Assembly (NCBI RefSeq): GCF_964204865.1
Contig: NC_135262.1
Location: 744,001 to 808,000, forward strand
Direction of reading: 5' to 3'
Length of the DNA stretch: 64,000 nt
Source: Styela clava
Taxonomy: Eukaryota
The position numbers and the translations under genes were made by a program. This document shows, one piece after another, positions 53,867 through 64,000 of the stretch; within the stretch, counting starts at the first letter, position 1; the number at the start of each line of letters is the position of its first letter. A model generated the notes under the pieces. It ran no database searches. It worked only from the letters and a program-made list of their open reading frames with translations, and was not told the origin of the DNA.

Positions 53867-55784
53867 GAGGCGTGGGGCGCAAGGTTTCTTATTTTCATAA
53901 TAGTCTTGAGGTAGGTTGGCTTGTGTTTTTGATTATGTTTGAGGTTTCAGAATTCTAATAAGTTTGATTAGTACCGCCGGGACATCTACTACTGACTACC
54001 GGTACCTGAAACGGTATTATATCAGTATATTAACCGTAAGCCAATATACCGGTACCGGTACCGTTCGTTTTGAACTTTCAGACTTTCGCAAATCAGAAAA
54101 TCGTAATGTCAGTAATGTATCACGGTACCAGATGTTATTTCATCCAAGTCAGTAAGCACTGTATCGATTAGAAGATTATTACTGTATTAAGACAGGATTT
54201 TATGGTTGAGTATTTAAGTATTGCTGTATTGTGCCGCAATGATATATTGATATTAGATATCTAGATATCGCAAATAAATTCAAAAATTGCTATTCCTTTA
54301 TTCCAATTATTAAAATGTTTTCCGTAAATTGGTCTGTTGATATAGTGGACAGATTGGTATTATCAAACACAGATAAACACAAATCATTATGTATCGAATA
54401 GTAACCTATGTCTGTATATTCAGTAAGTTACATGCTAACAGGAGATGTTCACTGCCTGACTGCTTAAACTAAAATTTGAAATGTTTGAGGCAGAAAAGTG
54501 AGGTGTTTCAGATTACTGGTTTAGTGTTTTTGTGCGATACTTTTGACAATATTATGTATTCAGCCATTGTATGATTGTTTCTTATTTTTGTTTCATTATT
54601 CTTTTGCCCTGTTAAGCTAATGAGGAAATATTTGATTTGATTTGGACTAAAATTCTCCCAGACGTTGGTCAGATAAGTTTTATTTATTCTGCAATTAAGT
54701 TTTGTTTGTAGGAGATAAATTTAATGACATTCTTGTTTGCTAATCATCAACATAGGTTATACTTATAGTGTTCAAATATTCCCGAAATGATGTCATACTA
54801 TATTTTTATAAAGCTATTTTTACCCTCTAGATAAGCAAGTTTTTTTTATTAGATAGACATTTACCTCAATTCTCAGTTATTGAAGATATTCAAGATTATG
54901 TCTTACTGTCTTATGCTCATGTTTTGGATTTTTTTTTACAAAATTGACCTGGACCTGAACGCTTAGTTTTTGAGAGTAAAAGGTTCCATTTTTGTTGCTT
55001 ATTATGTGTCAGTGGATTTATTTATGCTGGATATGCCTTGTTTATGGGTTATCGGACATTTTTGGCTTTTGGCCACAAAAATGGGTAAATCTGGAAATTT
55101 TCTTTATTAAATATATTCCGGAATTAATTTTTGATATGAAATATTGAATATATTCAATTTGTGTAAATTAAACATAAATTCATAGAAATTGAATTTTGGA
55201 AGCAGAAAAATCTATTTGGCAGTGTTCCGACTTTCCATTTTACAATGTAAGGGGCTAAATGAGGTCTATTTTTGTCTTGGTTGTCAGATATTATATGCAT
55301 TTTCAAATGATACATTGAGTTTGGATCTCCCTCCTAACCCTGTATTGGCAAAATGTGACCCCATTGACCAAATCTGTTGGGTGATTCAATATGCCTGATA
55401 CTACCACAAACCAAATTTAAATGTTTTAGCTAAAAAATAGCTTGAGGAATTTGTCTAGATTGCGATTAAATTTAATTTTGGCGCAATGTTCATTGTTTTC
55501 CATTTTATTTTTGTAACACTGTAAATAAAATTCTGTTCCAAAAATGTAACTTTTTTGTCACACTTGCCTGTCTGTTTCGATGGGCAAAATGTTAGCTCCT
55601 GGTCTAAAATCCTTGCCCACCCGTGTTCTAACATAACAAAAAATCCTGCCTTGTTGCCGCTCGAAACATCCCTTATTTACGTAACCTAGATATGAATATA
55701 ATTGTGAAATCTCTGTTTCTAGGTTCCTTACTGTACAGTTCCATTTCTCATTGTAATTTATTTATTTATTCATTGTCCGCAGAC

Positions 55785-58700
55785 ATGGATTTAAAAATTA
55801 TACTTGTTGCTATGACGATGGTTGCTATGATTCATTGTGAGGTGAGAATAGTTTTAAATAAATCATGACATGATTTTTTTTGTTTGGGAAACTGCGTAAT
55901 TTACTAATGTAAATTTATTTTCATATCGATTTCTAACATCTTATATATTCATAAATATCAGGAAAGTGGCCATTCTTGTTGTGAAATAAAATCAATGAAA
56001 AATCACTGAAGCACGACTTGTCAGAATAATTGCGCTGTAACAACAGTGTACCCATGCGGTCAATTTTCATTGTAGGATTTTAAACTTATTCAAACTAGAA
56101 GTCACTGAAGCATGACTTGTCAGAACAGTTCCATTGTAACAACAGTGTACCCATGCCGTCAATTATTAATGTAGAATTTTACCCTTATTCAAACTGAAAA
56201 TCACTTAAGCATGACTTGTCAGAACAGTTCCATTGTAACAACAGTGTACCCATGCCGTCAATTCTTAATGTAGAATTTCAACCTTATTCAAACTGAAAAT
56301 CACTGAAGCATGACTTGACAGAATAATTCCACTGTATCAACAATATACCATTTCTGCCCATCCCTGATATCATTTTTTTTTTATTCAGGATTGCAACACC
56401 GAGCTTTCTGAAACTTCTGGAGTGATAGTATCGGGGAAATACGGACATGGCATCAACTGTTCTTGGACAATAACTGCTCCAAAAGGTATTTGGATTTAAA
56501 AACTACCAATATTGGTTTTTCACAACTCTTTTCACCCTGAAATTCAAGATTTCGTAGTTCTTATATGACGGTCATTCCTTTTGCCTTATTCCTTTTGCTT
56601 CAAAAGAGGCTTCATTCAAGCACCAAATTAAATCCATAATGATATTCGGAATTCGGATATTATGCATTCCTTACTAGTTTATTATGATAGGATTTAACAT
56701 ATTTATCCCGGGGAGAGATGAGCCAAATAAGACTGTTTAATCATATGGCGAACCAAGGCCCCTCGTCCGTCTATCAGTACATGTTTGGTATGGGATTAGT
56801 TAGCCAGCTGTTTGTCTCAGATGCAAGGATTACGTGAACCACCCACAAAGGCCAGAATCCAGCGATTCTCCAGTGCGGTGGCGAGGGTATTCCTAACACT
56901 TAGCACAATACGTCACACTGCTGAGCCCGGTGAGATTTGAGGTACGAGATTTGAACCAGAGATGTGTAATCTGCTATGTCGACACAGTCAAGTCTAACGC
57001 TTCATTCGTCAAGCCGTTGTGCCAGCCTAAATGACATCTCCCTTGCTTTTTTTTTCATTTCTGTAGAATATTAATTTTGACCCTTGACCCTTTCCAGGAA
57101 ATTATGTCAAACTGGAATTCAACAAGGAAAAGTTTGATGTCGTCAGCAAGTTCATGTCTTGTAGCCACGACTACGTACAAGTGTTTTACGACTCCGCTAT
57201 CCCGAGCCCACACATCCAAACTTTCTGCAAATCGTTCGGAAATAAATTTGTCCCGAAAGACGTGATAACAAGCACGACAAATGTTCTTGTCATTAGACTT
57301 ATCAGCGATACGTTTTTCAAAAACGGGGAGGGATTTGAAGCAAAATACACTGTTGTGGATGAGTTTGGTAAGTTTCTTTTGATTTTATCTAATAGAATAG
57401 TAACAATGGGGATCTCTTATTTATTCCAAGCTGAGGAAAGCTAAGCAGGTGGCTTAATCATAGGGTGGAATTTTTCATTTGTCCCGGGTGAAAGGAAGGT
57501 ACTCCCGTAGTATGTGTACCAGGTTAGGGTTAGGCCCTAATTTCAATCTGATTTTTCATGATTTTAGTTCTATTACGAGTTTGGGGTCTGTCTGTGTTAG
57601 CCGAGTGAATATACTTCGTGCCCATAGGTTTCATTACCTTTATATAACTTGATGAAAAGTAGACTAACAAAATTAGTTACCTCCATATTGGTACACATAC
57701 TTCTGGAGCGCCGAAAGGAATAACTACATGATGGTTTTATCATAAGATAGGATTTTAGTATTTATCCTTCTGGAGAGAAAGCTGACGCGATGGCTTAATT
57801 ATAGGATAAAATTTTCCTATTTACTCCGGGGAAAGGAAAGCCAATTAGGGTGGTTGTTTCTTATGGTGAACCGTGGCTTCTCATCTTGCCAGTCCATCTT
57901 TGGTTTAAATTCCATGCCCATCCTGTGTGTAATAGATTGGCAATGTTTAACGAAAATATCCTGGTTCATCTAAATCAGCGGTTCCCAAACCGCGGCCCGT
58001 GGTAAAGATTTAATATGGCCCACTGAACTTGGGTGAACTAGTTTAGCACTTGTGTTTTTATCTTTTTGCTATCTACATATCGCCAATTGTTATGTCATTA
58101 TCACAGTTTAAGTGTATATTTGTGTAACAATTCAATTATACCAGTATCTTAGTTACATGTATTGGTATCGGCCCCTTGCGAGCTTTCCCTTCTCCTGGGC
58201 CCCGAATAATTTTTGCCCCTGGTCAATCAACTGTGGAAACCACCATTGCTCTAAAAAAAATAGCTCAGCGTTTGCTTGTTCAGGGCCATGTTCTGAGCGA
58301 AATGAGCATCATATAACAAAATATTTCTAGCCAGTTTTAATTAACTAGCTTTTCCACAAACATTGACGATCTTATTCCACTTACAGGCGAACCGATTGTA
58401 CCTGAAGAGACAGAAGGAGGTTTTGATGAAGATGACTGGGGGGAGGATACCACGGTTAGTTTGGATACATTTTTTTTTGAGGTAGTGGGGAGGGGGGAGA
58501 TTTAGGGGTAACGCATTTTCGGTGGTTAATTTTGAGGAAATTTGGCGTATTTTACGGGGGGTTACTTTTTAAAGTAAGCTGGATACTTTAAATGTGGCCA
58601 TGAGTTGCAGAATTAATTTATTGTTCGCATTTTCTCGTTTCGAGTTACCAGACAGCGTGGCAATTTTTAAAATACCTTTTATGGGATGTTTCTTTCCAGA

Positions 58701-59730
58701 GAATAAATATGAAAATCTTATCTTTGGAATCTGGCGTTGCTAGGTGTGGTGATTAAATAATCTCTGATAGAAATTGTGACCCTTAGAAATGCTAGTCCTG
58801 GATATTTGGTGTTGCTTTATAATTTTATTTTAATTATTCTTGTGTTTATGTTTTTGATCGTTTTTGCATGTTTTGTTTGGTTTGAACTAATTTTAACCCT
58901 AATTGGTTTGAATTTACGGTAATAACTGTTTTCCGGAGCGAGGTTTGCATTATTGCTTACGCTTTTATAGTAAGTTACTCAGTCACACTCTCGCACGCTC
59001 CGAGAGTCTCGAACTCTAACAGATCGATCGCTCAAATAACCAAACTCAAACGTAGAAAAACCAATGAGAATTCCCAACGTAAACTGACTGTTAGTGAGCC
59101 TTGCTCAGAGTGAAATTGTAATTGGCTCGTCAATGGAACCACCATATAGGTAAATTCGATTTTTTTGTCTAAATTTTGATTGGTAATTTCGGTTTTTCTG
59201 AATGCTCTATCATCAAGGATAATATGGTTAGTCTATAAATTATTCGCTCCAAGGTTAGTAGAAATGACATTGGCAAATTCAACTAAAACGTTTTCATTTA
59301 AATTCTGGATTGTTTTACTTCAAATTATTATTGAATCGGAAATCGGATGGAATGCTACGAAATTGTGTTTCTCTCACAAAACTTGCAAAAACACACAAAA
59401 TTTGCACTTTTCAAAATTTTGAATTACATGGGGATTCTCATCTGGTACTAGGGTCGACTCGTCGCTGGAAAATATGGACTACCTATGAAAGATGAAGGCA
59501 AAAACAAGGTTGAAAAAGATTGGGATGGAAAAAAAGTGCCCACATTGGGATCGAAATCAAAGGATAGCAAAAAGAAAAACAGAAAAGGAAAGAAACGTCG
59601 GGGTAAGAAGGAAAAGAAGAGCAAAGAAGAGAGAAAACTGGAACGTAAACTTCAACGACAAAAAATGAAAGCGCTCAAGCGTAAAGCAAGGAAAGCCGAA
59701 AGAAGACGCAGATCAAAATCAAAAGCTTAA
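55785..59730 (+). CDS. Secreted single-CUB-domain protein with acidic linker and Lys/Arg-rich tail (isoform 1), 5 coding exons
   Basis: Exons 55785-55841 (signal peptide MDLKIILVAMTMVAMIHCE), 56389-56485 and 57098-57367 (CUB: C..SGVIVS..NCSWTITAP..VKLEF..FDV..CSHDYV..FC..LISD..GEGFEAKY), 58387-58454 (acidic) and 59452-59730 (basic). All junctions are GT-AG with intron phases 0/1/1/0. Confidence 0.82.
55998..56345. repeat. 99-bp tandem repeat (x3.5) in a CUB gene intron
   Basis: TCACTGAAGCATGACTTGTCAGAA (with small variants) recurs at 56003, 56102, 56201 and 56300. Confidence 0.9.
56687..56927 (-). mobile_element. SINE (family A), internally deleted, in a CUB gene intron
   Basis: Reverse-complement head and tail match the family. 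Confidence 0.75.
57498..57712. mobile_element. Merlin-like MITE (family M2)
   Basis: GGTACTCC...GGAGCGCC ends, perfect 8-bp TSD GAAAGGAA, contains GGTTAGGGTTAGG. Confidence 0.82.
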
Positions 59731-60747
59731 AATGGATTTTAACTCTTTATCTACATATAAAAAAAACTTCATTAACCCTCATACTGCTACTAACAACTCA
59801 TGGTTTACTACGGCAACCATCTTTGCAGTGTCCATCCAACCTGGACTGGTAATCACATGGAGAATTGCATATGATAAGGTCGTCTTTTCCGATGGTCTGA
59901 ACAACTTTTTTATACCCCCTTATAATAATGTCGTAATTTTTTTTTCAAACATGCGACAATTTTTTCTTAAGTATCGTTGGGAAGCTTGTTTTAGCCTTTT
60001 CCCACTCACTGTCACACATAGGCTTAATCGTTCTTATCGGCTTTCCTCGTTGCTGAGACAGAGACTGAAATCCTATCCTGTCTTACCCGGTTCCGACAAA
60101 ACAAATTTGCTGGTGAGCATCATGAAAGCAATCTTGGTGTTTTGAAAAGTCAGCGCTCGCATTTTAAACGCTCTGCACATTGGTTGTTATGTATATATAT
60201 TACGGGATTCGGAATTGATTATTTTGTTATTCAATCGGAACCCTAAATATCGAAATTTGAATTTGTATTTCAAATTTACTGATCAATTAATTTTAATTAT
60301 TTTGAAATATCTAATCTTAATATTTTTCCAAATGTTGAAAAAATCATGTTAATTTCTACATTTTTACGTTTCAAATATTACTAACTTATGTCAGTCTTTG
60401 TTGCATTCCTCAGGTTTCCCAATTTTCATTATCTCTGTTTGAAATAATTTTTAATTTGAATGCTGAATACCGGTACGGTGGTATCACAATTTGATTTGAA
60501 TTTGAATCTCGCAAGTTCATAATTCATAATAAATAATTCAATAATAAATTCAATTTTATAATTAAGAATTGATTAATAAGTTTAATATTTATAGATTGAT
60601 TAATTTTATCAGAACTACTCTACTTAACTTCTAAAACCAAAAGTTGAGGGCTTTGGACCTTTTTTTTTGAGCAAATTTGCAACAAATTTGCAACTCTTCT
60701 ATCGGTACTCTTTCACTTTGAGTTAAGTGCTCGGGAAAGCTATTTAC

Positions 60748-61317
60748 TAGGGGTCAGCAACCTTTTGTCACTCGCGGGTCAAAATTAGGGGTTGCAAGTC
60801 TTGGCACATATTTTTAGAAAGTAAAAAACCAAGATGGCCAATGACTCGAAATTTTTTCACACAGATTAGAAGAAGAAAATTAAGGAGACTGCGACAACAT
60901 GTGAACTCATCCTAGTCGTCTTACTAAAAGAAAAAAAAATTGTGAATGACATTTAATAATGTGATAATTATTGTTGATTAACATCAGTGAGACATCTCTC
61001 TAATAAATATGGATTTTATTTCCTTATTGCATTGAATATTTTCTGCGCTATTGAACCTGCTGCACCCAGCATCAACTTTTCTGCGTTTTGTTGCCGTTTG
61101 TCTAATTATAATTAAATTGTAAACTCGTTGAATGAGTAGCTGTCTGTTCACTAAATTGTTAGGTTATAAATAATATAATTCAATCTACAAGTTCTCACAA
61201 TAAAGTCTCTCACGTAAAGAATATAGTCGTAGAAACATTTTTTTTTAAAACATTGGTCGCGGGCCGGATTACTTTACTCTACAGTCCGGATCTGAGCCGT
61301 AGGTTGCAGACCCCCTG
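60748..61317. mobile_element. hAT-like MITE (partial inverted copy at ~21450-21773)
   Basis: Ends GGGGTCAGCAACC / GGTTGCAGACCCC. The internal GCATCAACTTTTCTGCGTTTTGTTGCC is shared, inverted, with 21522-21566. Confidence 0.65.
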
Positions 61318-62764
61318 CTACATACCTTCGTTTGAGCAAGCTTGCTAAAAACTTACTTTCGTTAATATCTATCCCTCGTTCTGAACTGTTATATTTTTTT
61401 ATATCCTTATCTTATCAACTGTATCTGTGACTCTTATCAATGTGATATTCATTCCGTAGCTTTCTGTTTCAAGTTCAAAGGTCATTGTGAGTTACCTTTC
61501 TGCTTCATATATCCTGTGTTTATCTGGTGCCAATCTATGCTTTCTCAAAATCACTGCTTTTTATGTTTATCCAATGAATCTGTAATAAATTGATTTTGCA
61601 CTGAGATATATTTCTAATTAATGGATTTATTTGGGGTCTGTGTGATTTAAGTTTAGTTCTCACTGTATGTTATTGTGGGCAAGTTGATCCAGCGTTGAGG
61701 TCTCGAGATGAGATGACTTGATTCTGACTTTAATCGCCATTTATTAAAGTTTGGGGTGTACTAGGGTATTGTGTATTGAACTGCAGGTTCTTTCTCCTCA
61801 TTTACTTCCTATTCTAGATCCGTATGTTGCTGTTGCCACAAGGATGCGTGACTGAGATAAGTAATATAAAGATAAATAATCTCTTTCCACGAAATATCGA
61901 GTATATTTATGAGCTTTCGTTAGATCATAGTCTAACTTCTTCAGATAAAACAAGATATGGCTGCAAATAATAAAGATCAGTAATTAGTTAAAAATTGTAG
62001 GATTAAAATTACAGAAATACATTGGTCGGTTAGGTCTATCTCTACTGTGCGGATTCAGAGATTGATACTGGGGGTTTCCAGGTTTGTCCATTTATATGTG
62101 TTCCAATGTTTGCATTTGCCGTTTGGTCGGCAAGTTTTATATACTACTGGACCGCATTTGGCCCGTTTGCCGACTCTTGCTCTAAGTGCTCAGCAAACAA
62201 ATCCAAGTTCAATGAGCAATGGCTGCTTATATACAGCTTTGTTCAAATTATTTAAAGTGTATTAAAAAAAGCAAATCTGAAAAGGCTATCTCAAGTTGAA
62301 AAAGGGTAGCTAGTTTGTACTACCGAGGGGAGTTCTTCTCAGCATTTTAATGGTTGCTCCTTTACTTCAGGATTGTTTGCGCATGAGCATGGTGATTTGA
62401 GGTGATTTTTTGGTGCTGCCGTAGTATGTGAACCAAAATGGAGGGAAATGGAACGTAGTATGTGTACAAGGTTAGGGTTAGGCCTAATTTCAGGTTCAAT
62501 TACTACAGGTGTCACTTGGCTAGTGCTTACCAAACACGTAATAGAACCAGAATAAGGAAAACTGAGATAAAATTATGGCCTAACCCTATTCTGGTACACA
62601 TACTACATTCGGTGTTTGCCATTTTGGTGCACATACTACGGTAGCTCCGATTTTTTTTATAAAAAAGATTTTGACACCATACAAGGCTTTCGATAAGCAG
62701 ACACTTTAAAAGTGAGAGGCCATTGCATCTTGCAAAGACTTGATCCAATTATTTCTTTGTTCAG

Positions 62765-63085
62765 AGCTCAAGCACAACAACTACCGCACCCACGACGACG
62801 CCTACAGCATCTTCAACCACCACAACTGCTAGTACATCTGCAACAACTACCTTGATAAGCAAAATCATTTCTTCAACTACCGCTAGTACCAAGGGAGGGG
62901 AAAGTGCCTCTAAAAGCTCAACATTGCCAAGCGGTGGTGATGACGGAATATCCGGAAATGCAGGTACCACTAAATTATTATTGATATTTAGTTTTATTCT
63001 TTATTACTTATCGATTTTAATCGGTGAGTGTGTTGATAGGTATTGTCTGTTAGATACACGCGATATCTTACGAAAGCGAGATTGA
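62765..63085 (+). CDS. Alternative last/downstream exon of the CUB gene: Ser/Thr-rich stalk plus GPI/TM-like hydrophobic end (isoform 2)
   Basis: Acceptor TTTGTTCAG|AGC is phase 0, matching the donor at 58454. Translation SSSTTTTAPTTTPTASSTTTTASTSATTT...SGGDDGISGNAGTTKLLLIFSFILYYLSILIG. The 3' boundary is uncertain, with possible donors at ~62964 and ~63024. Confidence 0.65.
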   Translation, partial: SSSTTTTAPTTTPTASSTTTTASTSATTTLISKIISSTTASTKGGESASKSSTLPSGGDDGISGNAGTTKLLLIFSFILYYLSILIGECVDRYCLLDTRDILRKRD

Positions 63086-63290
63086 ATCTGCTCCAGATTT
63101 TGCATGTGCATTCATCATATGTCGTACCAGAAGCCTATTGATTTTGGGCGAATTATATCGTATAATTGGCGAGTTATTAATTAATTAGTGATGGGACACA
63201 AGGTGTCACTATGGAGTAAGAGCGCTGTTTTGGGGGATCCCCTAACTTTCGATCGATAAGTCTTCGGTCTCTGACCGATATTCTAGTTTT
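63004..63290 (-). mobile_element. HINE-like element, inverted copy
   Basis: Reverse complement of the 48680-49094 core (GATTGAATCTGCTCCAGATTTTGCATGTGCATTCATC; GGGGATCCCCTAACT). Confidence 0.7.
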
Positions 63291-63526
63291 TGGGCTCCTG
63301 AAGTATGCGAACCAAGATGGCGGACATCGGAATGTAATATGTGTACTAGGTTAGGGTTAGGCCATAATTTTAGGTACAAATACTACGAGAGGCACTTGGC
63401 TAGTCTTCGAACTCATAGTAGGACTAAAATAAGGGAAATTGGAATAAAATTATGGTCTAACCCTAACCTGTTACCCATGCTACGTTTCGATGTCCGGCAT
63501 CTTGGTTCGCATACTTCAGGAGCACC
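63291..63526. mobile_element. Merlin-like MITE (family M1) nested in a HINE-like element
   Basis: Same TIRs as 10706-10931, with 8-bp TSD CTAGTTTT. Confidence 0.8.
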
Positions 63527-64000
63527 CTAGTTTTTCTATTGCTATGAATATTTATAGTGTCAGTGGCTTGATCAAGAGTCGTGAGTTATGAAAAGCATTT
63601 CAAGCAACGGAAAACTGCTATGTATGGTGCTGAAAAATGCTTTTTTTACATTTTAAAGAGGGGTCCGACCTTTCAAAACCCCCAGTCTATGCGATGCCAA
63701 CGTAGCTAGGGTTGGCCACTCTGGCTCAAATCTTATTCAGATTCTAAAACTGAAATGGGCAGACTATGGCCCGTTGAGTAATTCATTCTGGCATGCCTGA
63801 TGCAGCCATAACCAAACTAAAACAAAATTTTGATGTTGAGCCAAAAATAGCTCAGGAAATTTGTTGAGATTGCGATTGAATTCAGTTTTGGCGTGAGGTT
63901 TATTGTTTTCCACTTTTGTAACACTGTAAATATTGTTCCTTAAATGTAACTTTCTACTTCACACTTACATGACCCGCCAGTCTAGCTGGGCCAAAATTTT

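Follow-up and report, generated by a model that had tools for sequence, protein, structure and literature searches.

How one gene can furnish the same extracellular module with either a strongly basic tail or a tether to the cell surface is the question raised by a locus of the ascidian Styela clava, LOC120333478, which was noticed at positions 55785–63085 of the window analysed here, a stretch of 64,000 nucleotides of contig NC_135262.1 (RefSeq assembly GCF_964204865.1, positions 744,001 to 808,000, forward strand). The gene is present in a single copy and encodes one CUB protein with two alternative C-termini; all of its exons are on the plus strand, and coordinates below are counted from the first letter of the window. 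The initial annotation, made from the letters alone, had proposed that a secreted protein with a single CUB domain switches between a polybasic soluble form and a form anchored through a mucin-like stalk by glycosylphosphatidylinositol (GPI) or a transmembrane (TM) segment. The switch is real and is a fairly ordinary one between a soluble and a membrane form, and both isoforms are already present in RefSeq, as the membrane isoform X1 (XP_039256842.2, 339 residues) and the polybasic isoform X2 (XP_039256843.2, 287 residues). Joined together, the exons are exactly identical to residues 32–287 of isoform X2 and 32–339 of isoform X1; counted from the ATG at 55785, the short and long forms comprise 256 and 308 residues, respectively.

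The use of both ends is documented by four public sequencing runs from the same organism (runs X1, X2, X4 and X6, from three studies), the contigs of which were aligned with positions 57200–63199. The RNA nature of these runs was a guess, supported by the spliced joints that the contigs carry, for which reason they were taken as RNA. Between 20 and 39% of the sampled words of the stretch were present in public Styela clava runs, approximately the share of exons and untranslated regions (UTRs). The joints 57367>58387 and 58454>62765 were found in all four runs and the joint 58454>59452 in two of them (runs X1 and X2), all with GT..AG borders, making exon 4 the branch point from which the transcript proceeds to either acceptor. 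Since every exon of LOC120333478 is single-copy in the 377-Mb assembly, these joints represent spliced RNA and not a retrocopy, and a paralogue or retrocopy was ruled out as the origin of the spliced contigs. Contigs over the polybasic exon, here termed exon 5a, were recovered from all four runs, and their k-mer depths and those of the contigs over the Thr/Ser-rich exon 5b are of one order. The arrangement is that of an alternative-last-exon pair, with one donor, two acceptors and a proximal exon that carries its own stop and is followed by an AATAAA at 61969. Both junctions that the initial annotation had put forward are used, and its central proposal holds: by choice of the last exon, a common signal peptide, CUB domain and linker gains either a polybasic tail ending in a stop or a Thr/Ser stalk leading to a membrane tether.

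The nature of this tether differs from what had been supposed. The distal acceptor at 62765 does open a Thr/Ser-rich frame, and exon 5b (62765–62963) encodes a mucin-like stalk in 199 nucleotides, with 37 Ser or Thr in 66 residues and a weak match to the Pfam Mucin profile, corresponding to residues 196–262 of isoform X1 (model P0133). The exon had, however, been read as running on to 63085 and as ending, after a candidate omega site, in the hydrophobic segment and stop of a GPI-anchored or otherwise tethered protein. In all four runs the contigs on exon 5b stop at 62963 or 62964 and continue with 54, 225, 381 and 1132 letters that are not from the stretch, so that exon 5b is an internal exon that ends at 62963, in phase 1, at a GT donor (CAG/GTACCA). 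As a consequence, the hydrophobic stretch and its stop are intronic, and the segment 62964–63085 is absent from the mRNA. In the frame opened at 62765, the residues from approximately 70–80 to 106 have at least 136 other matches in the genome, which start halfway along the hydrophobic stretch, and a dispersed repeat of ~290 nucleotides with thousands of copies occupies 63001–63291, inside the intron after exon 5b (2477 first-look candidates, on many chromosomes and both strands, with 90–95% identity among those listed). Because the stretch lies past the donor, and because most of it, including the stop, belongs to this repeat, what looked like a GPI signature is repeat sequence of the intron, translated in frame.

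A GPI- or tail-anchored form encoded wholly in 62765–63085, with the 62765 exon as the last one, would nevertheless make use of the frame that is open up to the stop at 63083–63085, in which small residues precede the hydrophobic stretch, and low-level retention of the intron after 62963 is compatible with the contigs. Apart from the exit of the contigs at the donor and the repetitive origin of the supposed anchor, such a form is opposed by the 20 partly charged residues that follow the hydrophobic stretch as read, which do not suit a GPI signal, and by isoform X1 and the orthologues described below, in which the SGNAG/SNNPG motif is joined directly to a TM exon. The probability left to it is vanishingly small.

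The exons that complete the membrane form lie just past the window, beyond the remainder of the intron (63292–64000). Exon 6 (64058–64166, L014:58-166; acceptor CCCAG, donor GTGAGA) encodes a TM helix and a basic stop-transfer segment, and exon 7 (from 64709, L014:709-835) encodes most of the cytoplasmic tail and ends in TAA. A tblastn search with the 308-residue protein (P0003) placed its last 78 residues at 64057–64179 (100%) and 64707–64832 (93%); each of the two exons has one copy in the genome and their joins match isoform X1 exactly. The 1132 additional letters of the run X6 contig also fit exons 6 and 7 together with ~0.9 kb of 3′UTR. The best 19-residue Kyte–Doolittle window of exon 6 has a mean of 3.23, and no other segment exceeds 1.6; behind it come a Lys/Arg-rich stop-transfer stretch and a cytoplasmic tail of 50 residues with a net charge of +5. 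A signal peptide, one helix of ~20 residues and a positive-inside stretch are the features of a type I single-pass protein. Since exon 5b splices into exons for a TM helix and a cytoplasmic tail, the long form is, as predicted from its sequence, a type I membrane protein composed of a signal peptide, the CUB domain, an acidic linker, a mucin-like stalk, a TM helix and a short tail. Membership of the GPI-anchored proteins was rejected on the grounds that, as judged from hydropathy, the TM helix of the actual product is internal and 50 cytoplasmic residues come after it. The initial annotation had allowed that the 62765 exon might continue by splicing into further extracellular domains; it does continue by splicing, but into TM and cytoplasmic exons.

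This membrane form is not peculiar to Styela. The 308-residue query returned two full-length, unnamed proteins derived from transcripts (P0135 and P0136, with identities of 39 and 36% and 94–100% coverage), as well as a 'cubilin-like' protein of Phallusia mammillata with two CUB domains (A0A6F9D9L2, P0137). All three span the whole long form, from the signal peptide and CUB through the Thr/Ser stalk and an almost identical TM segment to the cytoplasmic tail, and have in common with it a C-terminal -(E/T)FPL motif. Their identity to the Styela protein amounts to 69–78% in the TM and juxtamembrane segments, compared with 24–36% in the CUB domain, and as the best-conserved part of the long form the TM helix probably makes specific contacts within the membrane. 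The acidic, Trp-containing linker is found in two orthologues known solely as membrane forms, whereas the Phallusia protein differs from that of Styela in lacking such a linker and in having a second CUB domain. Judging by these alignments, the membrane form is an old ascidian gene, conserved beyond Styela in further ascidians, and the earlier statement that no known gene has this architecture gives way to a gene that is annotated in RefSeq and has full-length relatives. Searched by words, the TM and tail segment matched only itself, which is uninformative, and the Pfam Syndecan profile matched neither isoform. Atlas entries that resemble this segment (neurexin/syndecan-type proteins, MUC1 and glycophorin C) had scores of at most 0.88 with few common features; they are no more than leads, and were not used.

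The part common to both forms corresponds closely to what the initial annotation had described. Exon 1 (55785–55841; donor GTGAGA) contains the ATG at 55785 and a hydrophobic leader of 19 residues, a signal peptide for which the orthologues have aligned counterparts at their N-termini. The current RefSeq models use instead an ATG at 55692, and the in-frame, hydrophobic extension of 31 codons at 55692–55784 translates into residues 1–31 of models P0131 and P0133. The start at 55785 is favoured since the orthologues P0135 and P0136 begin where this ATG aligns, and the ATG at 55692 is probably not the conserved start. An acceptor-like TCCGCAG is located 2 nucleotides before 55785, and could be a site of spliced-leader trans-splicing that removes the upstream ATG.

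The CUB domain is spread over two exons as first read, with its first third in exon 2 (56389–56485; Pfam CUB profile positions 1–34) and the rest in exon 3 (57098–57367; positions 39–110, E-value 4.7e-6), both of which end in phase 1. On the RefSeq protein, Pfam PF00431 is matched over profile positions 1–110 of 110 with an E-value of 1.3e-12 and 48.4 bits, above the curated cutoff of 21.4, and four Cys residues lie inside the domain. The closest solved CUB domains are those of cubilin, PCPE-1 and neuropilin, the a2 CUB among them. Similarity to cubilin and neuropilin is limited to the CUB domain, at ~30–33% identity, and identification of the gene with either cubilin (EGF repeats and 27 CUB domains) or neuropilin (two CUB, two FV/VIII and a MAM domain) was rejected, the Styela protein having one CUB and no other domain. 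Exon 4 (58387–58454; donor GTTAGT at 58455) follows with 68 nucleotides that encode the acidic, Trp-containing linker, of net charge −10, and ends in phase 0 at 58454.

From this donor, the proximal acceptor at 59452 leads into the 92-codon Lys/Arg-rich frame that had been predicted. The coding part of exon 5a, an alternative terminal exon, covers 59452–59730 with a TAA stop at 59728–59730, and its translation is identical to the tail of isoform X2. The 92-residue tail contains 29 Lys and 13 Arg (46% Lys/Arg), with a net charge of +31, an isoelectric point of 11.2 and basic runs such as KKK, KKRR, KRK and RRRR. Its basic clusters and high charge are compatible with a tail that binds heparin or other glycosaminoglycans, and the short form may bind glycans through it.

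Whether the polybasic isoform is of use to the animal is a separate matter, as it could be a young, lineage-specific exonisation of an A-rich intron without selected function, either splicing or polyadenylation noise that makes for less of the membrane form, or a non-functional by-product. Exon 5a is of low complexity (133 A in 276 nucleotides) and its acceptor is the weakest of the gene, with 11 pyrimidines in 20 positions compared with 15 in 20 for exon 5b. The orthologue searches returned membrane forms only, no polybasic alternative end being known in P0135, P0136 or P0137, and no homologue of the 92-residue tail was found in the Styela genome or in a set of 5.8 billion proteins, nor any look-alike in the Atlas. 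On the other hand, base shuffling at the composition of exon 5a left a 92-codon frame open in 63 of 20,000 cases (0.3%), which argues that the frame is not a chance product of A-rich DNA, and the contigs with exon 5a, which come from each of the four runs, across three studies, and are about as deep as those with exon 5b, are not what noise would lead one to expect. The frame is, moreover, intact in three allelic or assembly versions, with at most three changes, all conservative, and the two substitutions displayed inside exon 5a (at 59511 and 59724) both fall on the third base of a codon and are synonymous; in contrast, the 1.8 kb that follow contain, among the rows listed, at least 10 insertions or deletions and more than 20 substitutions, including a 14-nucleotide deletion at 59914, figures that are indicative only. 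An exon without function thus appears unlikely, although the idea retains some weight.

The transcript of the short isoform extends well beyond its stop. Contigs are unbroken from 59786 to 61557 in run X1, and similarly in runs X2, X4 and X6, and those of all four runs cross the AATAAA motifs at 60528 and 60543. Contig depth is 25–260 along this region, falls after ~62000, just beyond the AATAAA at 61969, to 0–17 in 62000–62399, and is 0–14 in the intron at 58600–59399. As the contigs cross the AATAAA at 60528 and the depth falls only past 61969, the 3′UTR of the short isoform is ~2.2 kb long (59731–61990), its end being approximate and its poly(A) site placed from contig depth. The AATAAA at ~60528, which had been taken for the 3′ end of the short form, is not its main end. 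An ATG-initiated open reading frame (ORF) of 137 residues at 59732–60145, one base past the stop of exon 5a, was considered as a second cistron and rejected: it has no Pfam match, its matches in the genome are weak, scattered and interrupted by stops, and the allele with the 14-nucleotide deletion affects its interior. It is most likely to be non-coding UTR.

The basic tail might also serve a purpose other than retention in the matrix, as the precursor of a cationic peptide of the antimicrobial type, released by dibasic or furin cleavage, or as a ligand of the protein's own linker or CUB surface that keeps it auto-inhibited. Haemocytes of Styela clava are a classic source of cationic peptides, and the tail has several runs of Lys and Arg and one R-X-K/R-R site (RRRR, tail residues 84–87); cleavage at this sole furin-type site would, however, free just five residues. 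With regard to auto-inhibition, the linker carries a charge of −10, which is insufficient to neutralise the +31 of the tail, and complete masking of the tail by the linker, an idea of the initial annotation, is unlikely for this reason; the idea is weakened further by the occurrence of the acidic linker where no basic tail is known. In favour of a CUB surface as the partner, the Ca2+-binding CUB domains, with an acidic triad of Glu45, Asp53 and Asp98 together with Tyr52 in C1s numbering, grip lysine side chains (PMC4222235). In HMMER alignments, the lysine-contacting Glu (that of cubilin FHLE and PCPE-1 FDLE) is replaced by Val in the Styela sequence FDVV, and the position is not Glu in the orthologues either. 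Both Asp equivalents are kept and the position of Tyr52 is occupied by His, on a partly assumed equation with the C1s numbering. Assignment to the Ca2+-dependent, lysine-binding subtype (C1s, MASP and cubilin type) was rejected in view of the Glu-to-Val and Tyr52-to-His replacements. We regard a tail acting as a peptide or as an auto-inhibitor as quite improbable.

The gene is thus best described by two fates of one transcript, a secreted polybasic form and a type I membrane form. In the first, exon 4 is joined to exon 5a at its weak acceptor, 59452, and polyadenylation follows ~2.5 kb further on, giving a predicted secreted protein of 256 residues whose last 92 make up the basic tail. In the second, exon 5a is skipped and exon 4 joined to the strong acceptor at 62765 and then to the stalk, TM and tail exons, giving the type I protein of 308 residues. 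The choice may be governed by kinetic competition between the weak exon 5a acceptor, together with its poly(A) site, and the strong distal acceptor, the classic skipped-terminal-exon arrangement. The short form would be released and held by its basic tail on polyanions, such as the sulfated glycans of the matrix or tunic; as it is missing the conserved TM and tail module, it would be uncoupled from the signalling or association of the membrane form, and could, for instance, compete from the matrix for whatever ligand the CUB domain binds.

Several points weigh against this account or parts of it. The evidence for the junctions 62963>64058 and 64166>64709 is indirect, namely the match to RefSeq, the breaking off of the contigs at the donor and the transcripts of the orthologues. 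Topology and signal peptide were called from hydropathy, and contig depth is unsuited to the estimation of isoform ratios. Secretion, glycan binding and decoy action are properties that the short form would have on the strength of its sequence, and since no homologue of its tail was found the function of exon 5a may be young or absent. Taken as a whole, the account of a transcript with two fates is nonetheless very probable. A more ambitious version, in which an ascidian-restricted CUB/stalk/TM family works with a membrane partner and a newly born, A-rich exon of the Styela lineage converts its product into a secreted decoy pinned to glycans by a +31 tail, is a tentative one, which we would sooner doubt than accept.

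The two ends recall different groups of known proteins. CXCL12-gamma, VEGF-A with exons 6/7 and the long form of PDGF-A have alternative polybasic tails that bind heparan sulfate and hold the factor near cells, and LOC120333478 resembles them in that a secreted module acquires a C-terminus rich in Lys and Arg from an alternative 3′ exon. It differs from them in that the alternative is membrane-spanning, whereas their choice is between soluble and matrix-bound forms; there is no sequence homology, and glycan binding by the Styela tail is a prediction. In IgM (mu-s and mu-m), soluble neuropilin-1 and sFlt-1, a terminal exon and poly(A) site further upstream are used, so that the TM exons are dropped and a soluble ectodomain is left. 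As in neuropilin, a CUB-bearing type I protein has a soluble alternative, but the Styela ectodomain consists of one CUB, without FV/VIII and MAM domains, and its soluble form has a polybasic tail of 92 residues, whereas those of IgM, neuropilin-1 and sFlt-1 have short neutral tails. A third parallel is offered by NETO1/2, SOL-1 and LEV-10, type I CUB auxiliary proteins that work with membrane partners. By analogy with these, the fact that the TM helix is the best-conserved segment hints at a membrane partner for the Styela protein; the comparison is a lead only, the Styela protein having one CUB and no LDLa domain, and no homology to them having been detected outside the CUB.

Soluble and membrane isoforms of one gene, and retention by polybasic tails, are long-established principles, and neither would surprise a specialist. 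The corrected model identifies the tethered form as a conserved type I membrane protein rather than a GPI-anchored one, the intronic repeat taken for a GPI signal being a useful caution for the reading of raw eukaryotic sequence, and brings to light an uncharacterised, apparently ascidian-specific family of CUB receptors with an unusually conserved TM segment. The gene also provides a clear natural example of a terminal-exon switch, in which a very basic tail takes the place of a membrane anchor. Should the tail exon prove lineage-specific, it would offer a tractable case of the birth of a new exon that changes the location of a protein, and if the glycan-pinned decoy were real, exonisation would have given rise to a matrix-bound decoy recently and at a datable point.

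As regards its annotation, the exon 3 peptide, compared without a profile with 1.84 billion proteins, returned two of 256 and 308 residues, 97% identical, and the Styela clava RefSeq models are members of the clusters of these two database proteins. A twin locus in an older Styela clava assembly, LOC120333385, is 97% identical and is missing from GCF_964204865.1; it is probably a haplotype copy. The automatic RefSeq names for LOC120333478 are 'uncharacterized' and 'zinc metalloproteinase nas-34-like'. A Pfam scan of both isoforms gave CUB and CUB-like matches, the weak mucin match and nothing else; identification as an astacin metalloproteinase, which would call for a zinc-binding catalytic domain, was rejected since the astacin domain is absent from both, and the name 'nas-34-like' reflects similarity in the CUB domain only. 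No paper mentioning LOC120333478 was found in the literature. The only other match to the CUB of exon 3 in the genome is a fragment of 28 residues (C17:996496-996579), 61% identical to the start of the exon and containing two stops; it lies 195 kb downstream and is probably what remains of a partial copy after decay.

The introns and flanks of the gene contain several repeats. A tandem repeat with a 99-nucleotide period (~3.5 copies, 84–88% identity) is located inside intron 1 at 55999–56349. Palindromic elements resembling miniature inverted-repeat transposable elements (MITEs) are found at 57498–57716, 62408–62650 and 63287–63526, with a common GGTTAGGGTTAGGCC core and inverted arms of 79–90 nucleotides. 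The depth of the RNA contigs over these MITE-like elements reaches tens of thousands, with many chimeric joints, which indicates that they are embedded in many transcripts. A stretch of ~230 nucleotides upstream of exon 1 (55408–55631) recurs with 73% identity upstream of exon 6 (63820–64000, continuing to L014:38), and a further partial copy, in minus orientation, is present 13.4 kb beyond the end of the window; the stretch probably represents one more dispersed element.

At a distance of ~10 kb downstream of the gene, minus-strand ORFs of 387, 145 and 207 residues (73764–75894, L014:9764 to L015:1894) resemble, by eye, a transposase of the hAT/ZMYM type. Beyond these, related pairs of plus-strand ORFs in tandem array at ~79969–80578, 87124–87699 and 103135–103649 (L015-L017) resemble, also by eye, exons of C-type lectin domains, and exons similar to one another that resemble signal peptides (MDFVKI...) occur at ~84.9 and 95.6 kb.

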